Source: Cyanophora paradoxa CCMP329 (Eukaryota > Plantae > Glaucophyta). From it: a stretch of 64,000 nt of DNA. This document shows, in pieces, positions 3,001 to 54,845 of this stretch. Position numbers and translations under genes: made by a program. How positions within the stretch are numbered: position 1 is the first letter of the stretch; the number at the start of each line of letters is the position of its first letter. Location: assembly GCA_004431415.1 (NCBI GenBank), contig QPMI01000143.1, positions 1 through 64,000 on the forward strand, read 5' to 3'. Under the pieces are notes generated by a model, which was not told the origin of the DNA, ran no database searches, and saw only the letters and a program-made list of their open reading frames with translations.

Positions 3001-6000
3001 TGCGCAGCGACCCGCTCCCGACGCTGGACCGGCCCGCGGGACCCCGGGCGGCGCGGCGCACCCCGCTGAACATTGACGGCATGTCCGCCGAGGAGATCGA
3101 GGAGCTCACCCGCCGCCTCTACCGCCAGGTGCCCTCGCTCGCTCCGTGCCCCCTCCCCTTCCCCTGACCGCCCCGGCGCCCCAGATGGGTACGGTGGTGT
3201 CGGGCCACGGGGGGTGGGTCTCGGTCCTGTGGGACGGCTGCCCCGAGCAGCACCTCTACAGGCGCCCGCCCCGCCCCGCCCCGGCCCGCGCGCCTCGCCC
3301 TTTCGGCCCTTATTCACCCGCCCCCCCGCAGGTGGGGCTTCGAGGAATCGTACGACATAAGCGTCGTGGAGATGCCGCCCATCGAGCAGCGCATCAACCG
3401 CGACGGTCCCCCTCCCTCCCCCTCCCCCGCCTCGTCGGCCCTCCCAAGCGGGGCCCTCTCCCGAGCGCAGGGGCCCCGGCGACTCGGTCGCGCAGCGGGC
3501 GCTTCTACTGCGGCCGGCGCGTCCTCCGCTGCCGCTGCTGCGACGGCCACTGCGGCCCCGACGGCGGCTGCAGCTGCCCCGCCTGCCGCGCCCTCGACGC
3601 CGCGCACCCCGTGCGCCCCTCCGCCGCCGCCGCGCCGCGCCGCGCCGCGCCGCCGACCGAGCGAGGGCCGCCGGCAGGTCCCGCAGGGCCTGCGGCGGCG
3701 GGGGCGCCCGCGCTGGCGGCCGAGGCGCTTCCGCTCGCGGCGTGGGACCCGTCGGCGCACGGGTCGCACGTGCACATCCGTGGCGACGGCGACGGCCGCG
3801 GCGGGCAGACGGCCAAGTGCTCCTGCGGCCCCCATGCCGCCCTCTCCCGCGGCGCCCTCGCCCGGGGCACCTACGTCTGGGAGCTCGCCTTCTCCGGCAA
3901 CCGCAGGTTCTACGTCGGCGTGGTGCGGTACCCCCCGACCGCCCGCCGCTTCCTCCTTCCGGCGTCGAATCGCGTACCCCTGCGCGCCCGCAGGTGGACG
4001 CGGGGTTTGCGGCCGGCCGGATGGACGGTGAGACGGCGGAGGAGGCGGAGGACAACTTCATGTGCCCGTCCTCCTTCGGCCCCTCCGGATCCGCCGACCT
4101 CGCGCGATTCCCCGACCCCGGCGGTGCGCCGCCCCGAGAGCTCGCCCGTACCCAGGCGCCTCATCCCCCCCCCCCTCCCTCGACTAGACCGGAAGCTGTA
4201 CGTCGCTGTCGACGCGGACCGGCGCGTCTTCACTGTAGCCGTCGAGGGAGAGGTACCCCCCCGTCCTCCCCCCTCCCCCGCCCCTCCTTTTGATCGCCGA
4301 CGGACGGGCGGGCGGGGCAGGCTGCGCGCCCTACGCGGCGGTTCAAGCCGACGGGGGCGCCGGAGGGGGCCCCGGTCCGCCTCTGCGTCGTGCTCTGGCG
4401 GGAGGGCGCCGCCAGGCTCGCCCGTGGCCCGCAGGCCTGGGAGTGGGGCGCCGCCCGGCACGGCTCGGCCGTCGCCCTGGCCTCCCCGACGCGCGCCGCC
4501 TGCCGCGGCCTCCCGGGGGTCTACGGCGGCGTCGCCCTCGGCTCGTTCGCGGAGCGCGGGGAGGCGCGGGAGTGGCGCGTCGCCCTCTCCGCCCCGGGCT
4601 GCTTCCTCGGGCTCCTCCCCGACCACTTCCCGTTCGAGGCCCTCACGCGGGCCCCGAGCGGGGCGCCCTGGCGGCCCCAGCTCGTCGCCCTGGGGTCGGC
4701 GTACCCCCCCGGGGACGAGGACCCCCGCCTGGAGCCCTTCGACTGCGCCGCCGACGTCGCTCGCGTCGCCCTCGAGCCCTCGTGCGCGCCCCGCGCGCCT
4801 CCCCGCGCGCCACGCTCTGCCTTCCGAACCCGCCGGCCGGCAGGGGCGCCGTGCGGGTCTCGCGCGGCGAGGGCGCGGGCGGGGCGATCGAGCTGGCGCT
4901 GCCGGCCGGCTGCCAACGCTGCACGCTGGTGGCCCTGCTCCCGCCGGCGCCTCCGCGACGCTGCTCGAGCCGCCGGCGCCCGCCCCGGAGGCCGCGCTCC
5001 GCCTGCCCCTGCCGGCCCTGCCCCGGCGCCCGCGGGAGACGGAGCCCGAGCCGGTGCTGATGGTGGCGCGGCCGGCGGAGGGGGGCGCGGAGGCGCCCGG
5101 CCCCGTCTTCGATACCGCCGTCCACGGGCCGACGATCGAGTTCGACTCGCCCCGGGTCGCCCGCTGCTCGTGGGGCCCCGCCGCCGTCCTCCTCGCCGAC
5201 AAGCCGCCCCCCGGCGGTGCGCGGCCCCCATACGCCCTCGAATCGCCGACGAGCCTCCCCGCCGACCAATTTGGCGACCGCAGGCCGGCTGACGTTCCGG
5301 CTGGGTGTGACGGGCAACACGAAATTCCTCCTGGGGACGTGCCCCGCCGCCAGCCCCCTCCTGGACGCGGCGCCCCCGGGGGAGCTCGCCGAGTGTTTCC
5401 TCTGCGTGCGCACGCTTTCCCCCCCCGCCGGCCTCACCAACGCGGGCGAGCGAACGTTACCCCGGTCCCACCCTCCATCCCCTCCCGCAGACCGAGGGAA
5501 CGTCGACCGCCGCGTCCATCGCCGTGCGCCGCCGAAGTCCCGTTCCGCCGCCGCGCCGGCGGCGCCGCGACCCCTGCCGAGTCGGCGTACCCCCGCAGAG
5601 CTTTGCCTACTCCGCAGAGGAGCTGATCGCGGTAACCCTCGACAACGAGCGGCTTGCCATGCGGGTCCGCACCGCGCACGTACCCCCCTCTCCCACCGAG
5701 CCCCTCTTACCCCGTTTTCTAGGTCGCCCCCCCGCGGTGCGCCTCGGGCCCCTCGAGGGTGCGAGACACTTCCCCTTCCTCCGACCGCCGCTCTCTTCCC
5801 CCCCCCCGCGAGCGCGTACCCCCCGCAGGTGCTGGAGGTGCCGTACGCGCCCGCGGAGGGCCCGAGCGGCGTCGTGTTCTGCGTCATCCTCCACGGACAG
5901 TGCGCCGCGCCCGCCCCGCCGCTCCGCTCCGCCCGCTCTCCCGACGGGCCGGCCGGCGGGGCCAGCGCGACGATTGCGGTGCTCCCGGGGCCGCCGGAGG

Positions 6001-9000
6001 GCGAGGAGGAGGGGGCCCCGGGGGCCGGCGGCGTCCCGCCTCCGAAGGAGACCTACGGCTGGGCCCCCGAGCAGCTCGTCGGCTGCACCGTCACCCGCGG
6101 CCGCGGTCCGCCGGCCCGCGCCCCTCCCTCCTTCGCCGCCTCCCTTCGCCGCTGACGGGCCGCGGGGGCAGACTGGAGCTACGGGGACCAGGACGGCAGG
6201 GAGGGCAACGTGGGGACCGTCGAGCGCGTCTACGGGAGAGGTCGCCTCTACGTACGGTGGCCCAACGGGCACGAGAACGCCTACCGGCGCGCTCTCGCCT
6301 CGCCCCGCCCCGCCCCGCGCCGCGCCGCACCGCCCCGGCCCAACCCGCCCGATCCGACCTGATGTCGATCGTGCGCACACGCAGGTGGGGCGGCAGCAGC
6401 GGCGGCAAGTACGACCTCACCGTCGTCGGCCTCGGACCCCACGTGGGCCCTTTCTTCTACGCTTTTCTTTGTTAATATTCCTTCTATTCCTTCTCCGCGT
6501 GAGTGATCCGGGGCAGGCGCCGGTGGCGGAGCGGCCGCCGTGGCAGGAGATGGCCGGTCGCCGCGTCGTGCGGGGGCCCCACTGGGACCGCCCCCGCGAC
6601 AAGGCGCGCCGGCCCTCCCCGCCCCCCGGGCGCCCAGCTGTGCCCCGCCTCTCGTGACGCGCGCGCGCAGGGCGGGGCCTCGGGCGCCGCAGGGACGGTC
6701 ACGGGCGTCGAGGCGGGCCCGGCGGGGGCCGGCGGCTGGCTCACCGTCGCGTGGGGCGACGGCGCGGCGGCCAACGCGGAGGAGGAGGAGGAGGAAAAGG
6801 AGGAGGAGGACGCAGGGCAGGGGCCGGGAGAAGAGGCGGCGCGGTACCGCTGGGGCGTCGACGGGAAGTTCGACCTCGCCCTCGCCTCCCCGGTGGCCCC
6901 CGCGCTCAGCCCCTTGTTGGCTGCGGCTCACGGTCGTCAGCTGCAGGCGGCCGCCGGGGCCGGCGAGAGGGCGTCCCCCGAGCACGTGGAGGCGGCGGCG
7001 ACGGTGGGCCTGCGGTGAGGCGGGGCCCCACTGGCGGGCCGCCTACGGCGACGAGGACGGCGGCAAGGGCTCCGTCGGGCGCGTCGCCGCGTACCTCGGC
7101 GCCAAGTGGGTCGCCGTCGACTGGCGGCCGGCCGGCGCCGGCGGCGCGGGGCGGGGCGGCCGGCAGCGCGGACAAGGGCAAGGCAAGGCGCCGGCGCGGG
7201 CCGAGGCTGCCGCGCTCCGCGCCTACCGCTGGGGCGCCGCCGGCCGCTACGGTGCGTCTCTCCTGGGGCCCTCGAGAGTGCGTGCCGCCGGCGGCCGACG
7301 AGGCGCGCTGCAGACCTCGAGCTGGTGGATGAGCCTCCGGCGGCGGCGGCGCCTACGGGGTCGCGGGCGGCCCTCGCGCTCGACTACAAGACCGTCACGA
7401 TAGAGCAGCTCTTCGGCTCGACGGTCGTCCGCGGGCCCGACTGGCGCGCCGGCCGCCCCGCCCCGCCCCGTCCCAAGCGCCCTCCGCCGCTGCGCCCCGC
7501 CGAGGCGCCCGCCCCGCAGGAAATGGGACAACCAGGACGGCGGCAGGGCGGCAGGGGCAAGGTGACCGGGCCCTCGGGCACGGCTCGCTGGGTCTCGGTG
7601 CGCGCGCGCGCGGCCGATGCGCGGCGGCCGCGCGCGCGCTGATCGGCGCGGCACGGCGCGGCGCGGCAGGTCGAGTGGGACAATGGCGACTCTTCCACTG
7701 CTACCGCTGGGCGCGTTCCTTTCTCGCGCCCAGATCCGCGCCTGACGCGCGCGCCGCGGGGCCGGGATCGGGCAGGGCGAAGACGGGAAGTGGGACCTGC
7801 GGATCGTGGCTCCGGGCCCCGCCCTCCGGGCGCGCTGGAGCGCCGCCTCGGGCGCCGCCGCTCCCCCGACGCCGTGAGCGCCGAGCGGGCCGTCGGCTGC
7901 CGCGTCACGCGCGGCCCCGTGCGCGCCCCGCCGCCCGCCCAGCGCCCCCGCAGCCCGCGCCGACGTCGGCGCTGACCTGAGCCCGGGGCAGCACTGGCGC
8001 TTCTCGTACGAAGAGGCCGACGGCGGGCCCGGTGGCCTCGGTCCGCCCCGCACCGCCCCGCCCCGCCTCTCCGGCCCCAGCCCGGCGAAGAAGGGGCGGC
8101 GGCAGGGGAGGTCCTCTGCGGGAACGCCGCCGGCTGGGTCGCAGTCCGCTGGGCCGCCACCGGACGCACCGCCCTCTACCGGTAACCCCTTCCCTCTTTC
8201 CCCCCCTCGTTCGCCCTCCTCACTCGCCCGCAGCTTTGGGGCGGGCGGGCGCTACGACGTACGCCTCGCCGACGAGGTGAGCGCGGGGTGGGGTGGGGCC
8301 CCCGCCTGGGCGCGGCCGCTCGGCTCCCGCCCTGAGCGCACTCCCGCAGCCGCAGCCGGAGACGGCCAGGCGGCCGGCGGCCGCGGACCCAAGGCTGCCG
8401 CCCTTGACCACCCTCGCCGGCCGGCGCGTCGTCCGCGGCCCCGACTGGTGCCGCCCGCTCGCCCGGCCCGTCCCCTCCGCGCCGCCGAAGGCGTCGGCGG
8501 GGCGCAGGATGTGGGCTCGCAGGACAGGGGCCGACGGGCGCGGGGCCGCGTGGTGGGCCCCACGCCGGGCCACGAGGGCTGGGTCACGGTCCGCTGGCGC
8601 AGCGGCCGCACCGCCTCGTACCGCTACGGCTTCGAGGGCGCCTACGACGGTGCGCGGCCGCCGCTCCAGCCTCCGCGCGCGCGGGCGACCCGGCGGGGCG
8701 CAGTGGAGCCGGCGGACGAGGAGGAGGCCGCCGCGGCCGCCGTCCTCGCCCCGCCGGGCCCCACGCCGCCCGCCTCCCGAACCCGCGGCGGCTCGCGCCG
8801 GGGGCCCTGCTGGGGGCGACGGTGGCGCGGGGCCCGGCGTGGCGCGGGGCGACGCGGACGGCGGGGGCGGCGCCGGCTGCACGGGGAGCGTCGAGGCGGA
8901 GAACGGCAACGGCTGGCTCACCGTCCTCTGGCCCGCACCGGCTCCCGCGGCCTCTACCGGTGCCCGCCGCCGGCCGCCCGCCCCGCCCCGCCCCGGCGCC

Positions 9001-12000
9001 TTCTCTTTCGAACCGGCGGCAGGTGGGGGGTGCAGGGCGCCTACGACCTCGCCCTGGTCTCCCTGGGGCGGCCGCGGCCATCCCCGGCGCCGCGTGCGCG
9101 CGCCCGGCGCCCCGCCGCTCCGCTCGCCCGGCGCTGAGACCGAGGGCGGCGCAGGCGGCGGCGGCGTTCAAGGCCGTGACGCCGGGCCAGCTGCTGGGCC
9201 TGTCCGTCCGCCGCGGCCCGCACTGGAAGTGGGGCGCACAGGCGCGCCCCCGCCCGCCCCGCGGCCCCGCCCCGCCCGGCACCGATCCTCACCGCCGCGC
9301 AGGACGGGGCGAAGGGCGCGGCGGGGGCGGGCGGGGCGACGGGCCGCGTCGTGCGCGTGGCGAAGAAGGAGGGCTGGGTGGTGGTCCGCTGGGCGGGCGG
9401 GGGCCGGCCCTTCGCGTACCGCTGGGGCGGCCGCTCGGGCCGCAAGTTCGACCTCGAGATCGTGGACCCCCGCAGGTGCCCCGCCCCGCCCCGCCCTGCC
9501 CCGCGCCCGCCCGGCCCGCCGGCTCAGGGGCGCGGCAGGGCGGCGGCCCGACCCGACGAAGCACGCGGCGGCGGACGTCGTCGGCCTCCGCGTGCGGCGC
9601 GGCCCCGCCTGGAAGGCGCGCCCGGGCCCGGCCCCGCCCCCCGCAGCCCCGCGCCCCGACCCGACGCGGCGCGGCGCCCGCAGCGGAAGTACGGCGACGA
9701 GGACGGGCGGGGCCCGCGGCTGGAGGGGTACAGGGGGAGGATGGTCTCGCCCCCGGGAGGGCGTCGTCCAGAGCTCCAACCCCAAGGCAGGCCGCCCCGG
9801 GCCCCGCCCCGCCCCGCCCCGCCCGCCCCGCCGCCCGTGCCGAAGCGGGGCAGGGGTACGTGGCGGTGCGCTGGGCGAACGGGAGCGCGCGCGTGTACCG
9901 GTGGGGCTTTTCGGGCGATACGTGCGCCCTGGCCCTCCCCGCCGGCCCCGCGCCGGGCCGGGCCGCGCCGTCGGCGGCGGCGGCGGCGTCTGACCGAAGC
10001 GGCGCAGGACGTGGCCCTGTGCGAGGAGCCCGAGCCCGCGGCGCCGGCCGCCGGTGCGGAGGCGGCCGCGGCTCCGGCGGAGGCGGGTCCGAAGTGCGCG
10101 GGCGGGGCGCACGAGTTCGTGCCTGACAAGTGCATGGTCTGCCGCGCGGTGCGGACTGTCGCCCCTTCCGCGCCCATCCCTCGTCCGCCCGCGACTGACG
10201 TCCGCGCAGTGCGGGGCGTGCACGGGGTACGGGAAGGAGTGCGTGTACCACAGAGACAAGGACCGGACGAAGGACGCCGGGAAGGAGTGCGGGTGCGGCG
10301 TCGGCGACGCCGGCTGCCGCGACTGCGGCGTCTGCCGCAAGTGCGCGGCCGCGGGGCGGCGGGCCCCGGCCGCCGCCTCCAAGCGGCGGTCCCCCGCGCC
10401 CGCGAAGAAGAAGGCTGTAGAGGCGGGCGGCTCCGGCGCGGGGAGCCTCGTGGGGGCACCGTGCTGCCCGGCCCGCACTGGGCGCTGCGGGAGGGCGGGC
10501 CGGCGGGCCCCGACGTGGCGGCCAGGGACGGCAGGGTCGAGGCCGAGGCCTCCGGCCGCCTGCTCGTCCTCTGGGCCGGCCTCCCCGGCCCGCGCGGTGC
10601 GCCGGCTGCCCGCCCTCCGCCGCTCTCCGCCGCGGGCGCACCGACGCCGACGACGGCCTAGCAGTGGTACCGGTACGGGGAGAGGGGCGCCTATGAGGTG
10701 CGCGCCGCGAAGGCGCCCCGGCAGCCCGCCGCGGGCGCCCCGGTCCCAGCCGGCGAGGTGCGCCCCGCCGCCCGCCCCGCCAGAGGCGCGGGGCCGACGC
10801 GCGGGGCGGGGCAGGCGGGGGACGGGGGGTACGAGTCGGAGCTCTCCTCGTGCCCCTCAGAGCCCGGGAGCGACGAGGAGGGGGGAGGGCGCCCCGGCGC
10901 CTCCGACTCGGACGGAGGGAGCGACGCCGGCGGCGGCGGCGGCGAAGAAGAGGAGGCGGAGGCAGAGGAAGAGGCGGCGGAGGGGGGCGGGGACGGGGCC
11001 GCGAGCGGCGAGGAGGAGGAGGATCGCGGGTCGGAGGCGGGCGCGGGGCAAGCCGCCGCTGCCGAGGCGGAGGCGGGGGCGGGGGCAGAGGCGGAGGAGC
11101 CGGCGGGGCGGGGGCCCGGGCAGCCCGATGCCTCGGACGACGACAGCGAGGGCGACGAGGACGGGGCGGCGGGTGCCCCCGTGGTGGAGCCCCGGCCCCG
11201 CTGGGAGCGCGCCAGCGTGCCCCTAGGCGCCTGGGTCACCGGCCTCGCTGTCTCCCAGGCGCGCCCGCGTACCCCCCCTCCACCTGCAGCGCTGACGTAC
11301 CCCCGCAGGAGGGCCCCGTCTTCGCGGCGTGCTCGTTCCAGGGCCTCACCGTCGGCACCCTGGACGCCCGCGCGCTGGCGGTGCGCGGCATCGCCGGCGG
11401 GCCGGTCGGTCGGTCGGGGGCGCCCTCGCCGACCAGCCTGCTCCTCGCAGGGCCAAGCGCCGGCGGGCCCCGACACCGCGGTCCGCAGCTTCGCGATCAG
11501 GCGGGTGCGCGCGCGCGCATCAGCTCGCCACGCCACGCCGTGCCACGGCGCGCCCTGCCTTCGGCGCGGCCTGAGCCCTGCCGCCCGCCCGCCCCGCAGC
11601 CGCACGGGGAGGAGTCCTGCTCCTGCGTCGCCGTCGCCCGCGGCGGCGGCCGCGTCGCCACCGGCGGCCACGACAACGCGGTGCGTGGCCGAGGCCAGAG
11701 CCCGCCCGCCCGCCCGCCCGCTCAGACGGGGCGGGGCGGGCAGGTGCGGCTGTGGAGCGTGGCGGGGGGCGCGAGGAGGCGCGGCTCTCGCGCCAGGACG
11801 ACTGGATCCACGCCGTCGCCATCTCTTCGGCCCGCCCCCCGCCTCGAGCGAGGCGAGGCCCGCGGCTCACGCGGGCGGGGCCGGGGCGCAGAACGGGGCG
11901 CTGGTGGCGTCGGCGTCGGCGGACGGGACCGTCTGCGGCTGGCGCTGCGCCCGGCCCCGGCCCCCGTGCGCCTCCCCTCCCCCCCCCCCCCCCACGCACC

Positions 12001-13340
12001 CGCCCTTTCCTCTCCTTCTCCTTCGAGCCGCCGCGCCGCAGCCGAGCCCCGAGCCGCTCTTCCGCACGCGGGCGCACCGCGGCAAGGCACTCTGCCTAGC
12101 CCTCGCCGAGGTGTACCCCTCTCGCCCCCCGCCCCGCCCCCCCTCCCTCCCGCTGCTGCGGCCCTGAGCTCTCTCTTCATCTCTCAGACCGGAGTCCTCT
12201 TCTCTGGGGGCGGGGATTCGGCCGTCCGCGCCCTGTGCGAGCCTCCCGTTCGCGTTTGCCCGGGTACCCCGTTGCTGACCGGGGCGCGTCGGTACCCCCG
12301 CAGCTCCGCGGAGACGGGTCGCCTCGCGGAGGGGTACGCGCAGATCACGTCGGGGCTCCAGGGCGCCGTCTCCGCCGTCGCCGCCGCGGCGGTACCCCTC
12401 CCAGCCGCCCTCCCCCTCCGGGTTTGCGAGGGGCGCGGGGCCGGCAGGACGGCGCGCACCTGGCGGCAGTCGACGAGCACTCTGTCGCCCTCTTCGACAC
12501 CCGCTCGGGTCTGACCTACCCCCCCCCCTCCCTTCCCCTCCCCCCTTCCCCCTCCTTCTTCCCCCCCCTCCCTCCCCCCCCCCCCCCCCCCCCCCTTCTT
12601 CCTTATGCGCCCGCAGGCGCCCTCGTCGCGCGGTGGCCGGACCCGCCCGGCGTGCGCACCCGCTCCGTGGCGCTTCACAGGGTACCCTTCCGGCTCCCCT
12701 CCCCCCCCCCCCCCCCCCGCGCCCTGGACCCTCCGCCCGCCCGACGCCCGCTCAGGAGGGCGCGCGGTGCCTGGTGGTCTGCGGCCGCTCCGACGGCACT
12801 GTGAGCCGTACCCCCCAGCAGCTGCTCCCCCCCCTCCCCTTTTCGAGCCCTACGCCCAGGTCGGCTTCTTCAGCCCGAGGCGGCGTGACGTAATCCTCTC
12901 GGAGGCGCACGTGGGGCCCGTCCTCTGCCTCGCCCTCTCCCACGTACCCCCATCGCCCGTCCTGCTGTACCCCCGCCCGCCCCTCACGAGGCCGCGCAGG
13001 ACGGCCGTTTCTTCGTCAGTGGCGGCCAGGACGACACGATGCGAGGGACGACTGTACCCCCCCACATTCTCCGGGTGCGCCTGTCCTGCCTCATTCTCCT
13101 ACCCCTCTTCATCTGAGAGCGTTCCGCAGCTGCCTTCAGAGCTCTCGGCCGCAAGGCCCGGACCCGCCACCGAGCCGGTCTGCTGCGCCCCGCTCTCAGC
13201 TCGTCCCCCCCAACTCACCCCTTTCGGCGCAGTCGACCGGTTCGGGTTCGGGTACCCGGCGGCGAGGCCGCGGCGAGGAGGACGAGGGGGAGGGCGGGGG
13301 CGAGGCGAGCGGGGGGCAGCGCAAGCGGCAGCGCGCGTAG
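1..13340 (+). CDS. Large multi-exon E3 ubiquitin ligase-like protein: RING, SPRY/NHR-like beta regions, ~15 MIB/HERC2 repeats, two Cys-rich modules, acidic linker, WD40 repeats (5' end lies upstream of the window)
   Basis: Splicing exons 77-91 and 145-230 gives (C)GHNFCKECLEQWLEDESTCPICR, the second half of a C3HC4 RING. A repeated motif VGRTVVRGPDWRYGDQDGG..GRV..GWVEVQW..G.R.SYRWGA..YDL (MIB/HERC2) occurs at ~1255, 1654, 2010, 2365, 2960, 6075, 6550, 7000, 7410, 7890, 8415, 8810, 9190, 9578 and 10448. WD40 motifs include ATGGHDNA/VRLWS, ASASADGTVCGW, FSGGGDSAVRA and FVSGGQDDT at 11600-13050. A plausible stop TAG lies at 13338-13340. Exact exon ends are uncertain in the C-homopolymer tracts. 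Confidence 0.8.
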
Positions 13341-13972: not shown

Positions 13973-14965
13973 TCAGAGGGCGACGGCGGAGATGGCGCCG
14001 CGCTCCGGAAGCATGATGGCGCGGCCGGGCTGGAACGAGGCGGGGGTCAGGCCCGGGTTCGCCGCCAGGATGCGAGAGGCCATCGCCGGGTCCCCGTAGA
14101 ACCGGATCGCGACGGATCTGAGGGGGGAGGGGGGTACACGTCAGGCGGGGGGTACGGGGCGGGGAGGGGAAGGGTACGGGGTGCGCACGCGAGGGTCTCG
14201 CCCTCCTCGAGCTCGTGGGCGGGGGTACGCTGGTGGGGACGCGGGCCACGACGGGGGGGGGGGGGGCCGGGGCGGCGAGGGCGGGGATGCCCCAGGGCTG
14301 GGCGGGGGCCGCCTGCGGGCCGAGGGCGCCCTGGGGCATCGCCTGGGCCGGCTTGCCCCCGAGGCGGTTGAGGAGCGCGTTGATGATGCGGGGCTTGCCC
14401 TTCGGCTCCTCCGCGACCCGCGGGGGCGGCGCTGGCCGCGCCACGGCGCTCGGGCTCTCCGGCGCCGGCGCCAGGGTCGGGAGGGGCGCCTCGGAGCCCT
14501 CGGCGGCGACCGGGGCCGCGGCGGCGGCGTTGGCCGCCGAGCCGGCGACGACGGGCGCGGGCGCGGCGGCGGCGGCGCCGTCGGCGGAGTGGGCGGCGGC
14601 AGCGCCGTCCTCGTCCTCCAGGGGCTGCTCGACCTGGACGTCGACGGGGTCCTTCCTGAGGGCGCTCACGCCGCGCATGAAGAGCGCCCGCGCCATCGCG
14701 AAGATAACGGCCGCCGAGATGAAGGTAGTCACGACGGGCCCAGGCCGGCCCACAGCGCCCGCAGCGCCGCGCCGCCCCGCCGCAGCGCCGACGCCACGAG
14801 CGACGCGAGCTGCCGCGCCGCCTCCGCGAGGGGCGACGGGGCGGCGCCGTGCGAGGCCGCCCCGCGGGCCCGCGGCCGGGGCGGGCCGCCCGCGCGAGGC
14901 GTGCGGGGCGTCGCCGAGGGAGGAGGAGACGGAGGACATGCCGGCGCGGACCGCGCTGCGCGCCC

Positions 14966-15002
<37 letters not shown>

Positions 15003-18000
15003 CGCTGCGGCCGACGCCGCGGCGGTTGTCTGCTGGGCGGCCGACGCCGCCGCGTCCATCACGGCACGCGAAGGGGAGGTGGAGCGCCGGCGGCGCGGCT
15101 GCGCCCGCGGGGCCGGCGGGGGAGGCCGGCGCTGCGGCGGCGGGGCGGCGGGGCGGGCGGCGAGCCTGCGGCGCCGGCATGGGGCGAGGCGGGGAGCGGG
15201 CGGGGCGGGGCGGAGGAGGCGGGCATCGGCGGGCGGGAAGGCTGGCGGGCGCCGGGGAAGGGAGGGCTCGGGAGCGGGGCGCCGGGGCGGGCGGGCGCGC
15301 TGGGTGGGAGCCGCGCGGGCGGCGGGCCGGGCGGCCCCGCGGGCGCTCTGCATCTCGGACGGGGCGCGCATCGGCGGCGCGCTCTCCTCCTTGCGCTTCT
15401 GCGGGGGCCGGGCGTCGGACGCGGCGAGGCCGGCGCGGCCGGCGCGCGCGGGGGGTACCGCACCATGTTGAACTGGAAGAACTTGACGTCAGACCAGGAG
15501 CCGGCGGGGCGGGCAGGCGCCTCCTCGCCAGGCATCCAGTCCTGCGGCGCGCGCGTCGGCGGGGCGGCCCGGAACGAAAGCTGAAGCGGGCGGGCGGGGC
15601 GCACGATCAGGAGGGTGTCGCGGGTGACATGGGGCTTGCGGTCGGGCCGGCGGGCGTCCGGGCGCCGGCGCTCCTCCGTCTGAGCCAGGACCTGGCGCCC
15701 GCGATCAGAGGCCGGCCAGACGGGGGAGTCAAGGCGGGAGGGGTACCTCGTCGAGGCTCTCGGGGATCGGAGAGGGCGTGCGCTCGCCGTCGGCCGACAC
15801 GGGCGCGGCGGCGGCGGGCGGCGCGGCCTCCTCGGCGCGGCCCTCGGCGCGGGCGCGGAGGGCGGCTTTTTGGGCACGCATCGCCTCGGCGCATCGCTCC
15901 GCGGCCTGCCGGAGGCGGTCAGAGAGGGGCGCGGGGGCGGCCAAGAAGGGACCGGGCAGGCGGAGCGGACCTGGCGGGCGGGGGCGCAGGCCTGGAAAGC
16001 CGACGCGAGGGACTCGGCGGCTGCGAGGGCGCCGTCGGCGGCCGCTGCCGCCTCACGATTCCGCGCCAGAGTCGTCGGCACGGGCGCCGGGCGCTGCTCG
16101 CGCCCCGACGCCTCCGCCGCAGACTCCACCATGATCTGCGGGCGGGCGCGCGTGAGCCCATCTACTGACCGGAGCAGGAGACGCGGAGGGCTCACCGCGG
16201 CGCTGTCGGCGGCGCGGGAGGCGAGGTCGGCGTCGTGCGCGAAGGAGCGCGTCGCGTTGGCGTGCTCCGACTTGTCCGCCGCCTCCGCCGCCTCGAGGGC
16301 CCGCTCCAGGCCGGCCCCGAGGCCCACCGGCGTGCCCCGCCCGAAGCGCGGGCCGCCCCGCCACATCCGCACGCGCTGCAGCTCCGCGCGCAGCTCGTCC
16401 GCCACGGCCGCGGCCGCGCGGTCCACGCCCGTCGCGTTTGCGAAGATCATCCTGCGGGGCCGGGGCGCGTGAGGCGAGGGCGGGGCGAGCGGCGCGGCGG
16501 AAGGGCGGACCCGTCGGCGCGGCGGAGGGCCTCCGCGGCGCGCTCGGCGGCCGAAGCGGCGCCCTCGACGGAGCCGAGGACCTCCATCATGCGGCGCCGG
16601 GCGCGGTTGAGGTTGCCGCGGCGGTCCTCGACTCCGGCGCAGACCTGGCGCGCCTCCTCCACGTCGCGGTCCCGCGCCTCCTCGACGGCCTTGCGCGCCC
16701 GCCCCGCCTCCTCGCGCGCCGCCTCCAGCTTGCCCGCCGCCGCGCGCAGGCCGTTCAAGGCCTCGGCCGCGCCGCGGGCCTCCGAGGGCCACCCGCCGCT
16801 GGCGCCGCCGGCGAACTCCGCGTCGGCGGAGAGGTCACGCAGCTCGACCAGGGCGCGCTCCAGCGTCGCCGCGGCCCGCCCGGCGCGCGCGTCCGCCTCC
16901 CGCACGCGGGCCGCCGCGACCTCGGCGCGGGCCTGGCCCTCGAGCCAGCCGGCACGTCGCCGCCCAGCGCCGAGCAGCTGAGCGAGAAGCGCAGCGCCGC
17001 CTCCTCGGCGGTGCGGCGGCTCCCCTGCGACGCCTCGAACGTGTCTAAGACGCGCCGGGCGACCGCCACGAGCGCCATCGCCTCGTTGCCCCCGGCCAGC
17101 AGCTGCCCCGCCGCGTCAGGCGGGCGGCGGGCGGCGGGCGGCGGAGCGGCCGGCGCACCCGCTGCGCCTGCTTCGCGTAGAACGACTCGAGCCGGCCGAA
17201 GAGCGCCTGTCGGCGGCCCGGATCAAATTCGCGCCCGGGCTCGGCCGGCGCGCGGGCGCGCAGCGGACCTGCAGTATGGCGAGCTGCTCCTGGGCATCCT
17301 CGCGCTCGGACGCGTCCTCTATCTTGACGACGAACTTGCGGACCTCCTGCAGCTCGGCCTGCGGGAAGCGGCTGCTCAGCGGACCGCGGCGCTCTCGAGC
17401 GAGGCGCGCGAGGCGTCGGCCACGCACCGCAAGGCGGGCGCAGGCGCCCTCCCAGCCCTTCAGGCGGGCGTCGAAGTCCTCGAGACGACGCCGCCGGAAG
17501 CGCCCCAGGGCTGCGCGCCCCCGTTCGATCCGTGCGCCGCAGATCAAATCTCACGTAGCTAACGGAAACGGGTCGCACCGGCGCGGACGCGCTCCGAGGC
17601 GTCGTCAAACTCGGTCAGTGGTGCGGCGATGCGGGCCGCCTCGTTCTCGGCCCGCGCAAACGAGTCCGAGAGCAACCGGCGGGAACGTGCGCGGCTCTCC
17701 GCCGCCTCCAGCGCGGCCGTGAGCTGCGCGCATGTCAGCGCCGGCGAATCCAAGCGCACAGCGGACGGATCCGCACGCACCTCCGCCGTCCGCGCGCGTT
17801 CCGTGCGCAAGCGCTCCACGAGAGCCTCCGCCTCGCGCTCGAGGCCGTCGGGAACCTGCCGCGCAGATGTCAGCGACGGTCGGTGGGACAACGCGCTGCG
17901 TACACGCTGACCTGCTCGTCTTCGATGCGCGACCGCGAGAGGCCCTTGGCCACTCGGCTGAGCAGCGAGGCGAAGCGGTCAGGAAGGCCGAAGTCGCCAT

Positions 18001-18874
18001 CCGAGGAGGTCGGCTCGCTGCCGGCGGGCCGGACGCCGGGGCTTTGAGCCGTCGCAACCGCGCGGATCTTGCGCTCCAGCGCCGCGTTCTCGCGCTCCGC
18101 CTCCGACACGGCCTCTGCCGTGTCGCGGAAGAGGTCGAACGCTTCGCGAAGGCGCTCCATCTGCTGCTCGCGCTCCGCGCTGACGCGTTTGACGCCTTCC
18201 AGAGCGCGTTGGAGCTTCTGGCGGTGCTCCGAGTCGGCACGTGTCGCCTGGACGTCAATCACCTCGCTGTTCTTGGAGTAACCGGAAGATGGCAGCGCCC
18301 GCGCTCTGCGCATCGATTTTGCGGTCAATGAGCGCGCAAAGAGATCATCTGCGAAGAGAATACGCACTCGTCGGCGCGGTTGGGTGCGTCGCCGTCGCCG
18401 CGATCGAGCGGGAAAACCGACTTGCTGCGCCGGCGCGTCTTAGCAGGTTGAGAGCTTCGATTCAACGAATCAAAGCACTTACACGACGCGTTGGAACCAC
18501 GGCCCGTCGTCGTACTGCGGTTGATTGGTGAGGCGGGCGACGCGCCGCTCCAAAGCGACACAGAACCTCACCGCCTCATCTCCGTCTCTTTGATCTGATG
18601 GAGTGATGCCAAGAGCGCATACCGGCATAGATACGCCGCCTCTGCCGGGTCCAGCAGGTGCGATACGCGCGTTGGCGCCAACCACGCCGAATTCAAACTC
18701 ACGCTGCTCGAAGCCCGAAATGCCGACAAAAAACGATCGGACTACTCTGGTAGACAGCCGCTGAGTGCGCTGCGCCGGTCTCCGAGCGACCGCTGTGGCA
18801 GGGGAGACGAATCCCGGTGCGGACCGCACGCCGCCAAAGGCGGCGGCGCACACGAAGCCGCCGCCGCTCTCCAT
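13973..18874 (-). CDS. Putative plastid-targeted long coiled-coil protein with one TM helix and a C-terminal LysM domain (multi-exon)
   Basis: ATG at 18874 gives MESGGGFVCAAAFGGVRSAPGFVSPATAVARRPAQRTQRLSTRVVRSFFVG, which is transit-peptide-like. A/E/R/L-rich heptad exons span 18360-15750. A hydrophobic segment VVTTFISAAVIFAMARALFM lies at ~14675-14735. Removing the GT-AG intron 14118-14188 gives HELEEGETLASVAIRFYGDPAMASRILAANPGLTPASFQPGRAIMLP, with stop TGA at 13973-13975. Two frame slips (~16950 and the G14 run at ~14253-14266) are needed to join all parts. Confidence 0.65.
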
Positions 18875-19101: not shown

Positions 19102-19353
19102 TCGCAAACAGTACATTCGCGTGTAGCGCTAGCTCAGTGCGCTCAGCGGCTGCGCCGTGCGAGCACAAGCAAGCACTAGCGCATCGCGACCGGCATTCTC
19201 GCACGGCGCGTGCTCGCGTTCGAATTCGCAAACAGTACATTCGCGTGTAGCGCTAGCTCAGTGCGCTCAGCGGCTGCGCCGTGCGAGCACAAGCAAGCAC
19301 TAGCGCATCGCGACCGGCATTCTCGCACGGCGCGTGCTCGCGTTCGAATTCGC
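19102..19353. repeat. Tandem duplication of a 124-bp unit (2 copies)
   Basis: TCGCAAACAGTACATTCGCGTGTAGCGC...GCGTTCGAAT starts at 19102 and again at 19226, and the copies look identical. Confidence 0.9.
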
Positions 19354-19831: not shown

Positions 19832-21712
19832 TTAGTACCAGTGGGAGTACGTGGTCGTCATATGCACGCGGGCGGCGGGGACCAGCGAGGGTAGCAGCCT
19901 GCCGGGCGCCGGCTCAGCGGGCCCGGGGCCTCCGAGGCGTGCGGGCGGGGCGCGAGGGCGAGGGCGAGCGCGCGTGCCTGCGGTACTTCTCCTCGATGGG
20001 GGACTGCCGCCGCCCGTCCGCGTAGTGCGTCCGGTCCCCGCTCGCGTACCGCTGCGGGCTGACGAAGGTGATGCGCAGCTCGAGGCGGTCTCCCAGGGGC
20101 GCGAGGCGCGCGAGGGCCTCCCAGGCCTCCATGCCCGGGGCCCGGTGCGTCGGCGTCGTCGCCGCCAGGCGGAGGCGGCGGAGGGACGGCGAGCGGGCGG
20201 CCGCCGCCACCGCCTCGAGCGCGCGGGCGACCAGGGGGCCGCTGGGCGCCAGCTCGACGTCCAGCGAGGCCAGGGCGCCCCCGCAGCAGCTGCCGAGGAG
20301 CGCCTCGAAGGCCTCCGCCTCCGCCTCCGCTGCGCGGCGCGGTCGGGACGGGGCGGCGAAGGGCCGAGGGAGGGGGGCCGGACGGGGCGCACCGAGGACG
20401 GGGGGCGCCTGCAGCTCGAGCGAGACGAGGGAACCCGTCCGGCGGAGGGCGCGGAGGGCCCAGGCGAGGGCGCGCGCCCGGGCCGCCGAGCGGGCCTTGG
20501 CGACAACGTCGACGGGCTCCGTCTCGCCGCTCTCGCGGTTGACGCCGCCGCCGCCGCCACCGCCCAGGCGCACGCGAAGGAGCTCGAGACTCTCGAGGCG
20601 CGCCAGCGAGGACACATCCTCCGGCGTCGCCCCGTCCTCGATCTGCGCGGAAGGCGGTGAGGAGGGGGGCGGAAGACCGGGGGGGGGTACGGACCACGAG
20701 GAGGGCGTCCAGGCGGGCGAGGCGGGGGAGCTTGTCCGCGAGGGCGCGGAGGGCGGGTCCCGATGCGCGGAGGGCGGTGCCAGTCCCGAAGCGCCGGTCG
20801 AGCGACGGCTCGTAATCATCTTCCCCGTCTCTCCCGTAGGCGGACGCCAGGACGATCGTCCGCAGGCCCGGCAGGCACCAGAAGTCCTCCAGCTGCAAGG
20901 GGCGCGCTCAGCGAGGCCGGAGGGGGGCGAGGCAGGGGGTACCGCGAAGGGCCGATCGGTGTAGACGCCGAGGCACTCGAGGGGCAGCGCGGAGAGGGCG
21001 GGAAAGGCGGCCGGGGGGAGGGCGAGGGCGGCGCGGCGGAGGCGAGGGCAGCAGGCCGCAATGCACTCCGCGAGGTCGGGGGGTACGTCAATGCGGGGCG
21101 GGAGCTGCAGCGACTCCAGAGCGGAGAAGGGCTCCAGGAGGGGCCGCAGGCGCTCCGGCACCAGGAGGGGTACGAGGTCGTCGAAGCCGCGCCCCTGCTG
21201 CACGGCCGCCGCGAGGCAGAGGCGGGCGAGGCGCGGGGCGGCGGGCCGCAGGGCCTCCAGCGTGTTCAGGACGTGCGGGGGAAGGGCCGCGGGGGGTACC
21301 GCGCACTCGGCGCGGGCCTCCACCAGCTCCCACGTGCGCGCCCCGCCGGGCGGCGCGGCGAGGGCGGCGGCGAGGGCAGGCAGACCCTCCCCGCCGGCCG
21401 CGCAGGAGCCGGCGGCAGCCAGGAGAAGCGCGCCGCGGACGAGGAGGCGGCCCGAGCCGGCGGCCTCTGCGGCGACAGCAACGGCAGCGGGCGAGGAGAC
21501 GCGGACGGGGAAGGGCGCGGCGGGTTCCCATACAATGCCTGCGAAGGCGGCGCGCCAGCCGCGGGAGACGCGCCGGAGGCTCCAGGCCGCCCGCGGGCCG
21601 GCGAGCTGCAGGACACGCGACAGCAGCTCCGGCGGCAGGCGCTCGAATGGGAAGGCCGAGCCCGAAGGAGCGGCGGCGGGGACGGGACCCGGCAGAACCG
21701 AGCTGCTCGCCA

Positions 21713-21747
<35 letters not shown>

Positions 21748-22466
21748 GGAGGTGCTGCGGTCGAGGTGTGGAGCGAAGGCGCCGAGATGCCTGCATGGCG
21801 GATTGTCAGTCCTGCGGTAGCAGGGGCTACGAGGAGAGAGCGCGCACGGGGAAGCTTTGCGGGAGGCTCGAGCTTTCCCCTGCCGGCGCTGGCGCCGGCG
21901 CCCCTGCCCCGGCCGCCGCCCCTTCCGCCGCCCCTGCCGCGTGCGGCTGCGGCTGAAGCGGGCTGCGCAGGTGCGGCTGGAGCTGCTGGCGCAACGACTC
22001 GAGCGAACCAGCAGGGGTCCGCGTCGGGGTGCAACGCAGATCTTCGCGTTGCCGGAGTGCGCGTCTCGCCGTCCGCAGCGCTCCCATCGTCGAGCGATTC
22101 GTTTTTGAACTGCGCGTTCCATTCGTCGATCTGGCGGGAGCGCTCGCGCTCCTCCTCGGCCTTGGCCGCTGCAGCCGCGCGCCGCGCGTCTCCATCGATA
22201 CCGAGAAGACGTTCCAGCAACTTCGCTGCACGCGGAATTGGCATGGAAGGCCTGAGCTCATCGCCTGAGCTCATCGCCGCTTGCTCGGCTCTGCCAGCGC
22301 TGCCGCTGCCGCTCCCGCCGGCAGCGGCATTTCTGCTCCGCGCCCAATACTCTCGCTCTGCATCATGACCAAAGACACCAGAGTAATCTCTCTGAAGAGC
22401 GGGATTGACCCCTGCCGCGGCGCTGGACACGCTGGACGCGCTGCCGCTGGCAGCCGACGCCCTCAT
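19832..22466 (-). CDS. F-box protein with degenerate LRR-like C-terminal region and a polyQ tract
   Basis: F-box motif FPFERLPPELLSRVLQLAGPRAAWSLRRVSRGWRAA, followed by LRR-like segments (LESLQL, CPRLRRAAL, LPRLARLD, LESLELL, LASLDVEL, LRRLRL). There are a few introns near 20650-20910 and 19920-19985, and the 3' end is approximate. Confidence 0.75.
21714..21746 (-). repeat. (CAG)11 microsatellite encoding polyQ in the F-box gene
   Basis: The + strand reads (CTG)11, in frame with Q11 of the F-box ORF. Confidence 0.9.
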
Positions 22467-23294
22467 CACCGCTGGGCTCTGTCACATGGTGTATACGTAC
22501 CCCAGCACAACTCTTCCCCTCGAATTTGAATTTGAATTACCGCCTTGAGCTTCGCGCAATTAATATTCGAACGCGCCGGGCCGGCGCCTAGCTCGGCCCG
22601 GCGGCCTGGCCTATAGACTGCTATAGCTAGGCTGGCGTGGCGATCAGGCCGTGCACGTGGCGCGCGCGCGAGCGCTATATATAGCTCAGCGGCTAGCGGT
22701 CCGATAGCGCTAGCGCGGCCGGCGCCGCGGGGTCAAGTTGAAACGTTCGCCCCGCCGCTCATCATGGCATGATCAGTGCACGTGAGCTCGAGACTCTCTG
22801 AGACCTAGATCGGAATCCGGATCCGGACTCCGGGACTGGAGGCTCGAGGCCCTGAGGGGCCCGGGGCAGGGCCAACCAGCTGCAGGGGCGGGGCGGGTTC
22901 AAAAAGATTGTACTGAAATCACTGCCAGGCTGAATCATGAATATTAACATGTAGAATACTCAGTGACTATTATAGAGAGCGGACATGACTCGGCGACATC
23001 ACGGCATCACTTACTCTCATGATCACTCACTCAAGTGTCTCTCAACAGTCTCAGCGTCTACGATCGAACTAACCATCATGGCATCCACTGAAATCAATAA
23101 ACTACAGCAGCACTGCGGCAAGCGGCATCTGTGTCGCTTACGATGCGATCTATACGTATACTGTAACATAACCTGCACCTGATTCAATTTCATTGCTAGA
23201 ATTCGAAAAACTTGAAAGGAATCGGCCATGGATCCGGAGGCCGAGGACCTACAGCTACTGCAAAAACGGGCCGTTGAGGCCCTCCGATCTACGA

Positions 23295-27228: not shown

Positions 27229-30200
27229 TCACAGCGGCTTCCCCTTCTTCTTGAGCTTCTCGTAGACCTTTGCCTCGTGGGCCTGCATGCCGAGCTCGGC
27301 CATGAGCCGCTTCGTCTTCTCCTTGCGCTCCGCGTCCTCCGCCTGCATCTCCCGGTGCTTCGTCTGCGCCAGAAACGACGCGTCCTTCCGCAGCTCCCGC
27401 ACCGCCCCCTGCTGAGAAAGTCAGGGGGGTGCGGGAGGGATGGAAGACGGAGCCGGCGGGCCTTCATCTCGTTGGTGTACTGGCGCTTCATCTTCTTCTC
27501 CTCGGCGCGGTCGCGGTCCACGTCGGCCGGGCGCAGGTTCCGCCCGAACTGCTCGTCGAACTTCGGGTTGAACATCTGCGGGGGCGGGGGCGGGCGAGCC
27601 GGGGTCAGCTGGGATCGTTTGTTCTTTCACAGGGCGGGCCGGGCGGCGCTGCGGACCTTGATGGGCGCCGGCTTGCGGGCCTGCAGCCGCAGCGGCCGCC
27701 GGGCCCTCTCCGCCTCCGCCGCCTTGGCCTCGATGCGCGCCGCCAGCGCCCCGTGCGCCTCGCGCAGCGCCGCCGGCAGCGCCGCCGCGCGCGCCTGCCG
27801 CAGCGTCGCCAGCACGGGCCCGTAGACGTCGCCGTACGCCGCGTTGCCCTCCAGCAGAGCGGCGAAGCGGCCCATGAGGGCGTACGCGTTGGCGGCGGCG
27901 TTGACGCGGAACTGGTCCGAGGCGAGGAAGCCGTCGGCGGCGGGCGTGCCCAGCTCGTCGAGGCGCAGGGGCGCCGGGCTCAGCTTCGCCGCCGCCTTGC
28001 GGTCCTTGACGGCGAGGAGGTCGCCCAAGGTCGCCGCCGAGGGGCAGGCCGCGAGCGGCGGCCACCGCGGGCCCCGCGGGGGCGCCCCGGCGGCCTCGCC
28101 CGCGTCGCCCTTCTTGCGCTTGGGCCCCGCGGAGGCCGGGGCCGGGGCCGGGGAGGGGTACGCGGAGAGGAAGGAGGCGAGGCAGGCGTGGAGGAAGCCG
28201 ATCGCCTCCGGGCAGTACCGCTTCCCGGGGGCGCAGTACTGCCGGGGTACAGCGTCAAAAGGGTGGTTAGGTAAGGTCGGGGAGGGGGTACGCGCGCACG
28301 ACGTAGGCGAGGGAGCAGAGGAAGAGGGCGGCGAGGAGGTCGTGGGGGGAGCGGAGGGGGCACTGGGCGAGCCAGCGGCAGGCGAGGGAGAGGGCCGGCG
28401 TCGTCACGGGGTGCGAGAAGTCCGAGGCGGGGAAGAGGGCGGGCGGGAGCTTCAGCAGCACGAGCTGCCCGGCGTCGGGCCAGAGCGACGGCGCGGCCGT
28501 CGCCCCTTCTCCGCCGCCGCCGCCCTCCTCGAGGCCCTCGGGGAGGCCCTCGAGGAGGCCCCTGCTGGTCTCCTCGCTCCAGGCCCCCACGAGCTCGCGG
28601 AAGGCGGCGGCGGCCACCTCGGGCATCTCCTGCGTGAGCTTGTGCACGTGCCTGAAGACCGAGTCGAGCTCGGCCAGGTCCACGGGGCCCCGCCCGCCCG
28701 GCGGGCCCCCCGCCGAGCGCCCCAGCCCGATCCCCCGCACGTGCTCCAGCAGCACCCGGTAGAACACTGCGGGGGCGGGGGGCGGGGCGGGGGCGGGAAA
28801 GGCGAGGCGAGGCGTCAGGCGGGGACGGCGGCGGCGGAGAGGCAAGGGGCGTCTAAGCTTGGCGCGCGGTCAGCTGGTAGTGCATGAATAAGGTGATCGT
28901 CACTGGCAATCGGCGATCTTGGTGATGGGATGGGATCATCACACCCGCAGCGCCTAGAAGCCCTCCCCCGGCCCCGAAAGGAGAGAAGAGGCGCACCCTC
29001 CATCTTCTTGCGGTTCTCGGGGCCGAGGGCGGCGCGGTTGCAGACGATGATGCGCTCGAGAACCGTCCCGCGGTCGGCCGCCGTCTTGCCGTACAGCCGG
29101 AGCAGCTTCCTCAGCTCCTTGTACGACTTGGGGCACTCGAACACGTACGGCATCTGCGCCCCCGGCGGCTCAGGCGCCGTCTGAGCGGCGCCCGGAGCGC
29201 TCCGGGGCGGACCTCCTCGACGGGGGGCGGCGCCGCCGGCTCCTCCTCCTCCCCCTCCTCCTCCTCCTTGTCCGCGCCGGCGGGGGCGCGCAGGGTACGC
29301 CTCCTCGAGACCCACGCCTCCAGATCCTCCCCCGCCTCGTCCTCCAGGTCTACCCCCTCATCCTCCTCCCCCTCCTCCCCCTCCTCTTCGCCCTCCTCCT
29401 CGCCGCTGCCGCTGCCGCTGGCGCTCCCCTCCTCATCGCCCTCATCGCCCTCCTCCTCCTCCTCGCCGCTGCCGCTGCCGCTGCCCTCGCCCTCCTCCTC
29501 CCCCTCCTCCCCCTCCAGGGCGAAGTTGCCGTCGAGGGCGTCCGCGCTCTCGTCCTTCGGGACCTTGGCCTTCTTCTCCTTCTTCGCCTTGGCATTGGCC
29601 TTCTCGTCCTTCTTCGCCTTCTTCTTCTTGGGGCCCTCGTCCTCGTCCTCGTCCTCGTCCTCCTCGTCCTCCTCGTCCTCGGACCCGGAGCCCTCCCCGT
29701 CGTCCTCCGAGCCGCTGCTGCTGCCCTCCTGCGCCGCCTTTTCCAGCTGCGCGGGCGCCGTCAGGCTTCAGGGGTACGTCTTTCCGGGAACGAAACGGAC
29801 GCGTACCCGCTCGGCCTCGGCGGCCATCTTGGCGCGGAGGCGGCGGGCCTTGTACCCTCCGAGGGGCGCGGAGGCGGGCATGGCCTTGGCCTCGGTGTCC
29901 GAGTCCGGGTCGTAGTCGCCCCGCATGCGCCGCAGCCGCTCCCGCTGCGCGAGAGGGGCGGCGGGGCGAGGCGTCAGGCGCGGGCGGCGGCGGCGGCGGC
30001 GGAGAGGGTCCGGAGGGGCGTCTAAGCTCGGCGCGCGGTCAGCTGGTAGTGCATGAATAAAGTGATCGTCACAGGCAATCGGCGATCTTGGTGATGGGAT
30101 GGGATCATCACACCCGCGGCCCTTCGAAGTCCTCCCCCCCCCCGTCTAAAAATAGCGTGCGGACCTCGAGGCGCTCGAGGCGCTCCTTCTCCTCGCGGGC

Positions 30201-46070: not shown

Positions 46071-46305
46071 TGCAGCGCTAGCTGTCCCTCGCGTAACTAG
46101 TACTGCATTTTTTTCCTGACCCGCCGTGCATGCAGCCAGCTAGCGCTGCAGCGGCGCAGCTTCTTTGCTTGCCCGGTGCGCTGCGCATGCTGTTCCGCGT
46201 CGTCCGATGTCGTGCGAGGACGCGTACGCGTACGCGTACGCCAGCAGCGACGAGCGCCATCTCTCACTAGTAATTGTGACGTAAAAGGAGGTCGCCGGGT
46301 CGCCG

Positions 46306-46530: not shown

Positions 46531-46754
46531 CCCCGCCCCGGCCCGCCCCCAGCACCGCGCCGGCACTCGGGCTCATCGATATCGCCGCCCTCGAGTCCTT
46601 TCGATGTGAGCCGAATTCGAACGTAAACTTTAATTAATAGGAGTCTTGACGTGGATCTCGTGAATAATGTCGTAACTATCTAAAATCTTCTAATATGAGT
46701 CTTAACGTGCATCTTATTCTAAATCTTAACCTATTCTGACTGCAGCTTATTGTA

Positions 46755-54804: not shown

Positions 54805-54845
54805 CGCGAGTACTACGCATACGGTACTAGGCTACTGGTACTAGT

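Follow-up and report, generated by a model that had tools for sequence, protein, structure and literature searches.

Several bitopic proteins of bacteria bind the cell wall, among them FtsN, DamX and DedD through a SPOR domain, MotB through an OmpA-like domain, and FimV/HubP through LysM. In plants, PDV1/PDV2 and ARC6 place a coil or a large domain on one side of an envelope membrane, which they cross by a single helix, and their C-terminal part reaches into the intermembrane space. Among organelles, the plastids of glaucophytes provide the clearest surviving example of a retained bacterial wall, and the host's handling of that wall is known for few proteins only, DipM and the wall-synthesis enzymes among them. 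The plastid of Cyanophora paradoxa, or muroplast, has such a peptidoglycan wall (PMC6704402), as presumed in a first-pass annotation of the DNA analysed here, and DipM, in this alga as in moss, combines LysM repeats with a LytM/M23 domain (PMC4015805). Here we describe a minus-strand gene within the first 64,000 nucleotides of contig QPMI01000143.1 of C. paradoxa CCMP329 (assembly GCA_004431415.1); this whole stretch is called the window below. The gene encodes one bitopic membrane protein, in which a long coiled-coil-like region, a single transmembrane helix and a flexible linker are followed by what is, judged by its sequence, a C-terminal LysM domain of bacterial type. This combination of domains is without description anywhere we searched.

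Compared with the known systems, the protein shares individual traits with each of them. DipM is likewise a nucleus-encoded LysM protein, working on the plastid peptidoglycan of the same alga (PMC4015805), but it descends from cyanobacteria, carries a hydrolase domain and lacks a long coiled coil. Identity with DipM or NlpD was rejected because the new protein lacks a LytM (M23) domain: no M23 match was obtained at E up to 1, and no other enzyme domain was found. With FtsN/DamX/DedD, MotB and FimV/HubP the protein has only the principle in common (a cytoplasmic part, one helix, a flexible linker and a wall-binding domain); these proteins differ in their binding domains or in domain order (the LysM of FimV is N-terminal), show no sequence relation, and none of them has a 600-residue N-terminal coiled coil. 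The likeness to PDV1/PDV2 and ARC6 is also one of layout and principle only, since those proteins bind protein partners and not a wall, and identity with either was rejected on the grounds that no search returned any sequence similarity. Finally, SlpA of Deinococcus connects the outer membrane to the wall with its SLH domain and long coiled coil (PMC9388160), and is thus an envelope tether that, like our protein, joins a long coiled coil with a wall-binding domain. The coil of SlpA, however, is a spacer on the wall side, whereas in the Cyanophora protein the membrane helix lies between coil and LysM, so that the coil cannot span the wall space. In agreement with the first-pass annotation, which recognised no described family of this architecture, none was found in any search.

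The published model of the gene, tig00000571_g2153.t1 (g2153 hereafter; EukProt EP00741_Cyanophora_paradoxa_P002221), has 1177 residues, and its annotated coding region occupies window positions 13973–18628 on the minus strand. It was the sole return, at 100% identity, when the 270-residue exon with the membrane helix was run with HMMER in full against 1.84 billion representative proteins, and it is reproduced exactly by splicing 19 minus-strand exons (18628–13973). All 18 introns are of the GT-AG type and 53–86 nt long, with no inter-exon gap above 86 nt. The exon frames, and with them one continuous gene, are independently backed because the third codon position is the GC-richest one in the annotated frame throughout exons 2–19 (GC content at third positions, GC3, of 0.83–1.00). 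Short introns are numerous in the C. paradoxa genome, the gene models of which were made with BRAKER1/Augustus and need manual curation according to their authors (PMC6704402). A frame slip suspected at ~16950 proved to be nothing other than the ordinary intron 10 (16978–17063, minus strand; 86 nt, GTCGCC...CTCAG). A bacterial or contaminant origin of the region was ruled out by the 18 spliceosomal-type introns together with the eukaryotic neighbouring genes, a human origin of the contig was likewise dismissed, and the plus-strand open reading frames (ORFs) over the gene region gave no family matches. The searched parts of the supplements to the genome paper do not mention g2153, and the contig name is likewise absent from the literature searched.

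The LysM domain lies at the end of g2153 and is split over two exons; its profile and similarity tests were done exon by exon. Exon 19 alone (47 residues, 13976–14116, minus strand) matched PF05489 (Phage_tail_X, LysM clan CL0187) with an E-value of 7.6e-5 and 22.7 bits, a marginal match given the curated cutoff of 22 bits. No other LysM-like piece emerged when the whole window was translated in six frames (E 1.7e-8 for exon 19). The C-terminal 78 residues of the protein scored 22.5 bits on the same profile and the full-length protein 17 bits only, with no precomputed domain. For PF01476, the profile of LysM proper, neither exon piece gave a match at E up to 10, each of them carrying only a part of the domain, and NCBIfam had none for the LysM pieces. 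The best match of exon 19 in the PDB was 2ltf, the gpX protein of phage P2, followed by two weak LysM chains (4uz2 and 5k2l), while tblastn against phage genomes returned mostly tail protein X and LysM proteins. From these matches and from the bacterial sequences described below, the C-terminal piece of the domain (14003–14117, minus strand) is assigned the two helices and the last strand, with the pattern ..RFYGDPAMA..AANPG..PG....LP; a tail of nine residues and a TGA stop complete the gene (13973–14002, minus strand). Of the strand-helix-helix-strand fold expected of a LysM, AlphaFold2 gave the annotated, truncated C-terminus the two helices (predicted local distance difference test, pLDDT, 70–83) but no strands, and a Foldseek search of the PDB with this truncated model gave nothing below E 5.6.

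Relatives of the domain were found in bacteria. When metagenomes were scanned with the last 138 residues of g2153, four bacterial proteins of 316–362 residues (L006–L009) were returned, and a genome scan added a fifth of the same architecture (L011). In all five, a membrane anchor at the N-terminus is followed by a Pro-rich linker and a pair of LysM domains, the second of which closes the protein. The last LysM (50 residues) of L006–L008 is 45–51% identical to the Cyanophora domain (BLASTP E 1e-7), and the C-terminal LysM domains of the bacterial proteins reach 25.4–30.5 bits on PF01476 (cutoff 20.9). Given this identity to domains that pass PF01476, we read the Cyanophora domain as a genuine bacterial-type LysM, nearer to the LysMs of bacterial cellular proteins than to the gpX of phages. 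The bacterial-type LysM announced by the first-pass annotation is thereby borne out from three sides, namely PF05489, the bacterial homology and the N-terminal motif discussed below.

The bacterial proteins, which come from freshwater metagenomes and metagenome-assembled genomes (MAGs), are bitopic and have the same order of anchor, Pro-rich linker and C-terminal LysM as g2153, and they share ..GETL..RFYGDPAMA..R with its domain. They differ from it in their short N-terminus before the anchor, their two LysM copies and the absence of a coiled coil. No similarity between them and g2153 was detected outside LysM, linkers included. Searches with the whole protein, with its C-terminal third and with the coiled-coil part found no relatives, and outside LysM g2153 appears to be an orphan that resembles no other protein. 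In the database of 5.8 billion sequences a 50-residue domain falls below the reach of the E-value, so that blanks there say little on LysM relatives. Three further returns of the genome scan (L012–L014) were discarded as chance matches to a single 8-residue pattern. The record of L011 (CAMDFJ010000005.1) bears the title of a Candidatus Kuenenia stuttgartiensis MAG; its locus has 66% GC, and the protein is nearly identical to L006 from a lake metagenome. Kuenenia genomes are AT-richer. The bin label of L011 may therefore be wrong, and the taxon of the bacterial relatives is uncertain.

Although gpX/PF05489 (2ltf) is the best Pfam and PDB match of exon 19, the two contexts differ. gpX proteins are free-standing, 60–77 residues long and encoded in contractile-tail gene clusters, whereas the LysM described here ends a 1177-residue, 19-exon eukaryotic membrane protein. 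Its identity to gpX (~35–45%) is also below that to the cellular bacterial LysMs. Membership of the gpX family was rejected accordingly, as the domain is not free-standing and its gene neighbours are Nop14, F-box, RING and MIB_HERC2.

Exon 19 covers only positions 14–53 of the 60 in the PF05489 profile, and positions 1–13 were therefore expected upstream. The phage tblastn matches, which always begin ~14 codons into the gene, likewise place ~13 LysM residues ahead of this exon. Directly before intron 18, in a frame different from that of exon 17, the DNA encodes HELEEGETLA (14217–14189, minus strand), a decapeptide that aligns to profile positions 5–13, immediately ahead of the exon 19 alignment. 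This N-terminal piece of the domain (14189–14217) would supply the first strand and the start of helix 1, and its last two bases belong to a split Ala codon. It shows the strand-and-turn motif with which a LysM opens (aromatic/His-x-hydrophobic-x-x-G-D/E-T-L); the bacterial relatives have ..V..GETL.. at the same position. Position scores were derived separately from five phage/prophage gpX-type sequences and from seven bacterial LysM domains, two independent sets whose N-terminal columns were not involved in finding either of them, save for TLA, already present in the g2153 query. On these two profiles HELEEGETLA scores 13.7 bits (p 5.6e-5) and 14.0 bits (p 3.7e-5), values equalled or exceeded by 6 and 4, respectively, of the 108,012 stop-free ten-mers in the six frames of the whole window. 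The seven residues left out by the annotation, HELEEGE, reach 8.8 bits alone (p 5.8e-4), against −15.1 bits on the LysM profile for the residues with which the annotation replaces them. Searched by itself, the short upstream piece had no Pfam match, and its 20-residue BLASTP query was also blank.

The two pieces are separated by intron 18 (14118–14188, minus strand), with GT at 14188–14187, AG at 14119–14118 and 71 nt between its ends, which is identical to the GT-AG intron that the first-pass annotation had proposed to split the LysM. Intron 18 resembles its sister introns, with a GTGCGC donor, a CTGAC branch-like motif and a CAG acceptor. Intron 17 is atypical. In the annotation, the LysM frame is reached via this 53-nt intron (14249–14197, minus strand), which cuts out HELEEGE and leaves an exon 18 of 8 nt (14196–14189). 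It is the shortest intron of the gene, has the lone GAG acceptor among 18 (the others being CAG), and shows a purine-rich 3' end with no CTGAC/CTCAC motif. Its atypical splice features and the profile scores suggest that intron 17 is probably an artefact of the gene predictor, introduced to repair the frame.

The need for such a repair would arise at a homopolymer run of 14 bases (14253–14266; G on the plus strand, C on the coding strand), which coincides with a frame slip suspected at ~14260 in the first-pass annotation. One C added to this run takes the frame of exon 17 into ...PPPP-RRGPRPHQRTPA-HELEEGETLA. Other GT-AG introns that could bring HELEEGE in frame were looked for by eye, and none has a plausible length, as there is no coding-strand GT between ~14417 and 14253. 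The loss of a base from a long homopolymer in DNA of ~80% GC is a familiar error of PacBio-type chemistry. The present assembly was made by PacBio/Canu/Quiver and corrected with Illumina reads (PMC6704402). We consider it quite probable that the 14-C run lacks one base by assembly error; a real frameshift or other splicing at the run is unlikely, and a real 8-nt exon 18 very unlikely. Exact look-ups with ten ORFs of the window and with g2153 put no second assembly of the C run on record. The LysM is complete only if HELEEGE is read, most likely via the base missing from the run, and it has gone unannotated because this probable one-base error made the predictor invent an 8-nt exon. In this respect, the domain noticed in the first-pass annotation improves on the published gene model, and other domains of the very GC-rich Cyanophora genome may be hidden by homopolymer errors in the same way. 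More long C runs, of 15, 22 and 18 bases, occur at 11979–11993, 12574–12595 and 12701–12718, ~1.5–2 kb past the 3' end of the gene. Such runs are likely sites of assembly error and could break other gene models alike.

Taken globally, the rest of the protein presents a simple order of regions. AlphaFold2, run without an alignment on full-length g2153, gave a model of low confidence (mean pLDDT 47.7), with long helices in residues 61–656, no structure in 657–964, a helix at 965–990, again no structure up to 1128, and the two short LysM helices. The region of residues 61–656 (exons 4–14; 15846–18271, minus strand) is coiled-coil-like: individual helices in the low-confidence model extend over 60–114 residues, an ad hoc score of hydrophobic residues at heptad positions a/d reaches z = 8.2 against 200 shuffles, and weak SMC-like and Rad50 coil matches fall within it. 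It is followed by a region predicted to be disordered and rich in Arg, Pro and Ala (residues 657–964; 14739–15845, minus strand). This region is strongly basic, with net charges of +9, +17 and +13 in the 100-residue blocks spanning 701–1000 and ~+39 over residues 701–965. Residues 966–987 (14670–14735, minus strand) form the single transmembrane helix, which corresponds to the AlphaFold2 helix at 965–990 and stands out as the one place where Kyte-Doolittle hydropathy reaches 2.0 (19-residue window). Beyond it, composition and the AlphaFold2 model indicate a flexible linker, first acidic and then Ala/Pro-rich (residues 988–1127; 14250–14669, minus strand). GC3 is 0.93 in exon 17. The order claimed by the first-pass annotation (coiled coil, single membrane helix, Ala/Pro linker, LysM) is thus confirmed, the parts before the LysM by hydropathy, AlphaFold2 and the heptad score.

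The charges flanking the helix also indicate a topology. By the positive-inside rule, the basic flank of a membrane helix stays on the cytoplasmic side. The flank before the helix in g2153 is strongly basic (the ~+39 given above) and the stretch after it is acidic, which predicts the cytoplasmic-type side for the N-terminal 965 residues, coil included, and the opposite side for the linker and LysM. An earlier claim that coil and LysM occupy opposite sides of the membrane is therefore supported as a prediction.

Peptidoglycan tethering is our best guess for the function of g2153. It is a tentative one, in which both location and ligand are inferred by us. The reading as a wall tether stems from the bacterial relatives, which have the layout of a tether from membrane to wall, and from DipM, another LysM protein, which works on this very wall (PMC4015805). 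Mechanistically, the basic N-terminal flank would keep the coiled coil cytosolic while the linker and LysM would cross the membrane. The ligand would be the peptidoglycan wall of the muroplast, since this is the obvious N-acetylglucosamine (GlcNAc) polymer in the cell, and it would be gripped non-covalently on a long leash. The anchor would sit in the outer envelope membrane of the muroplast more likely than in the inner one, because a credible transit peptide is absent. Such an outer envelope anchor, with a cytosolic coil and a LysM holding the wall, is a possible arrangement that we put forward with reserve. Through its cytosolic coil the protein could connect the walled organelle with structures of the cytosol, or it could serve to mark or space the envelope during division. 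A further step, in which a cytosolic coil invented by the host and anchored in the outer envelope would grip the wall by means of a LysM acquired through gene transfer, seems to us improbable. Should that further reading be true, the protein would physically join the cytoplasm of the host to a primary plastid's wall. As the lineage lacks PDV proteins, it might then set the position of the organelle or, at division, connect host machinery with the furrow of the wall. Wall binders anchored in a membrane and joined to a long coil of host type would represent a novel class of connector between host and organelle.

Several observations weigh against this wall tether. No orthologue of g2153 was found; from the annotated start (ATG 18628) the N-terminus is acidic, with Phe absent from the first 10 residues; the assembled sequence interrupts the reading frame at the C run; and gpX is described as a protein 'glue' of phage baseplates, with no proven wall binding (bioRxiv 10.64898/2026.09.14.750843). 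In the cyanelle proteome, where the first-pass annotation had suggested looking, six tryptic peptides of g2153 are absent from the accessible parts of the three supplementary tables of Koehler 2015 (PMC4510345). Table S2 of that work gives the database sequences of the identified proteins; the set covers 262 mostly abundant proteins, is based on older gene models and has long sequences shortened, which makes absence from the parts consulted weak evidence. The ~190 residues that follow the membrane helix are long for insertion into the outer membrane of an organelle and equally suit co-translational insertion at the endoplasmic reticulum (ER). Finally, the 246 bases upstream of the annotated start (18874–18629), on which a plastid presequence would depend, have a flat GC content over the three codon positions (0.68/0.63/0.67).

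This last point bears on a version of the tether located in the inner envelope. Here the protein would start at ATG 18874, a presequence would lead to the stroma, and a stop-transfer helix would leave the coil stromal and the LysM in the wall space, in a layout like that of ARC6; the stop-transfer route would yield the topology needed. ATG 18874 is in frame and in a good context, with A at −3 and G at +4. Residue 7 of its ORF is Phe, and a single residue among the first 50 is acidic. The hallmark of cyanelle transit peptides is a Phe within the first 10 residues, in a stretch rich in Ser/Ala and poor in acidic residues (PMC4510345). The true start codon is indeed uncertain, because annotated exon 1 (18572–18628) has a GC3 of only 0.42, compared with 0.83–1.00 elsewhere. 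A further ATG at 18313 stands in the frame of exon 4, three codons ahead of its annotated acceptor (18305–18313). The Phe-led N-terminus of the first-pass annotation hence exists as an ORF but lacks a coding GC signature, and its claim of plastid targeting is unsupported, the annotated N-terminus being acidic and without Phe. The extension (18629–18874, minus strand) gave no Pfam match and is probably 5' untranslated region rather than coding. In addition, the extension looks transit-like by crude criteria that 4% of random ATG frames in the window (14 of 353) satisfy as well, and g2153 was not found in the accessible parts of the cyanelle proteome tables. We regard the inner-envelope version as very doubtful.

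A location away from the plastid is a more serious rival, because the 190 residues past the membrane helix suit ER insertion, although we hold it to be rather unlikely. According to this explanation, g2153 would have its N-terminus in the cytosol and reside, as a type II protein, in the ER, Golgi, plasma membrane or flat sub-plasmalemmal vesicles, built like a coiled-coil tether of the golgin type whose luminal or extracellular LysM would bind GlcNAc glycans such as bacterial wall fragments or chitin-like material. The lack of a supported transit peptide and the absence of its peptides from the parts of the proteome tables consulted fit this view, and the basic N-terminal flank together with the long C-terminal part fits insertion as an ER signal anchor. 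Moreover, eukaryotic cell-surface LysM proteins such as plant LysM receptors are well known (PMC6207691). The LysM of g2153, however, is of the bacterial cellular type and present in a single copy, without the Cys-pair features of the plant receptor LysMs; the protein has no signal peptide and resembles no known family; and the internal peptidoglycan layer of the alga would be the natural ligand. It is also conceivable, if unlikely, that the LysM is no working wall binder, either because the frameshift at the C run is real and it is a decaying remnant or is cut short by the 8-nt exon, or because it makes protein contacts as in gpX. The broken frame of the assembly as given, the gpX family as best Pfam match, the failure of the exon pieces to match PF01476 and the non-significant fold search of the truncated model would all agree with this. 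Against it, GC3 in exon 19 is still 0.92 and its frame stays open until 9 residues past the domain, and the upstream piece still matches the start of a LysM (p ~4e-5), which would be unexpected after decay. Furthermore, the nearest relatives are cellular bacterial LysM proteins and not phage ones, and the chemistry by which this genome was sequenced classically makes errors in long homopolymers. On this evidence, the wall tether in the outer envelope remains the arrangement that we tentatively prefer.

The surroundings of the gene are of eukaryotic character. No tRNA or Rfam matches were obtained in the window. GC content is about 0.78–0.82 over its first 22 kb and falls to 0.47–0.60 at 46000–62000, where few frames carry a coding signature and none a family match. 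A Nop14 gene (ribosome biogenesis) at 27232–30922 (minus strand) consists of at least 4 exon pieces that match positions 160–862 of PF04147, and a RING finger piece (PF13639, E 7.6e-7) lies at 33164–33526 (minus strand). On the other side of g2153, MIB_HERC2 domains on three exon pieces at 286–7015 (plus strand; best E 2.1e-24) probably belong to one large gene of E3-ligase type. The F-box match of an 855-residue open frame at 19917–22481 (minus strand) is weak and falls below cutoff (E 3.5e-4). Between this F-box gene and g2153 lies a perfect tandem duplication (19102–19353; 124-bp unit, 2.0 copies, 100% match), and going downstream from this repeat the first ATG met is that at 18874.

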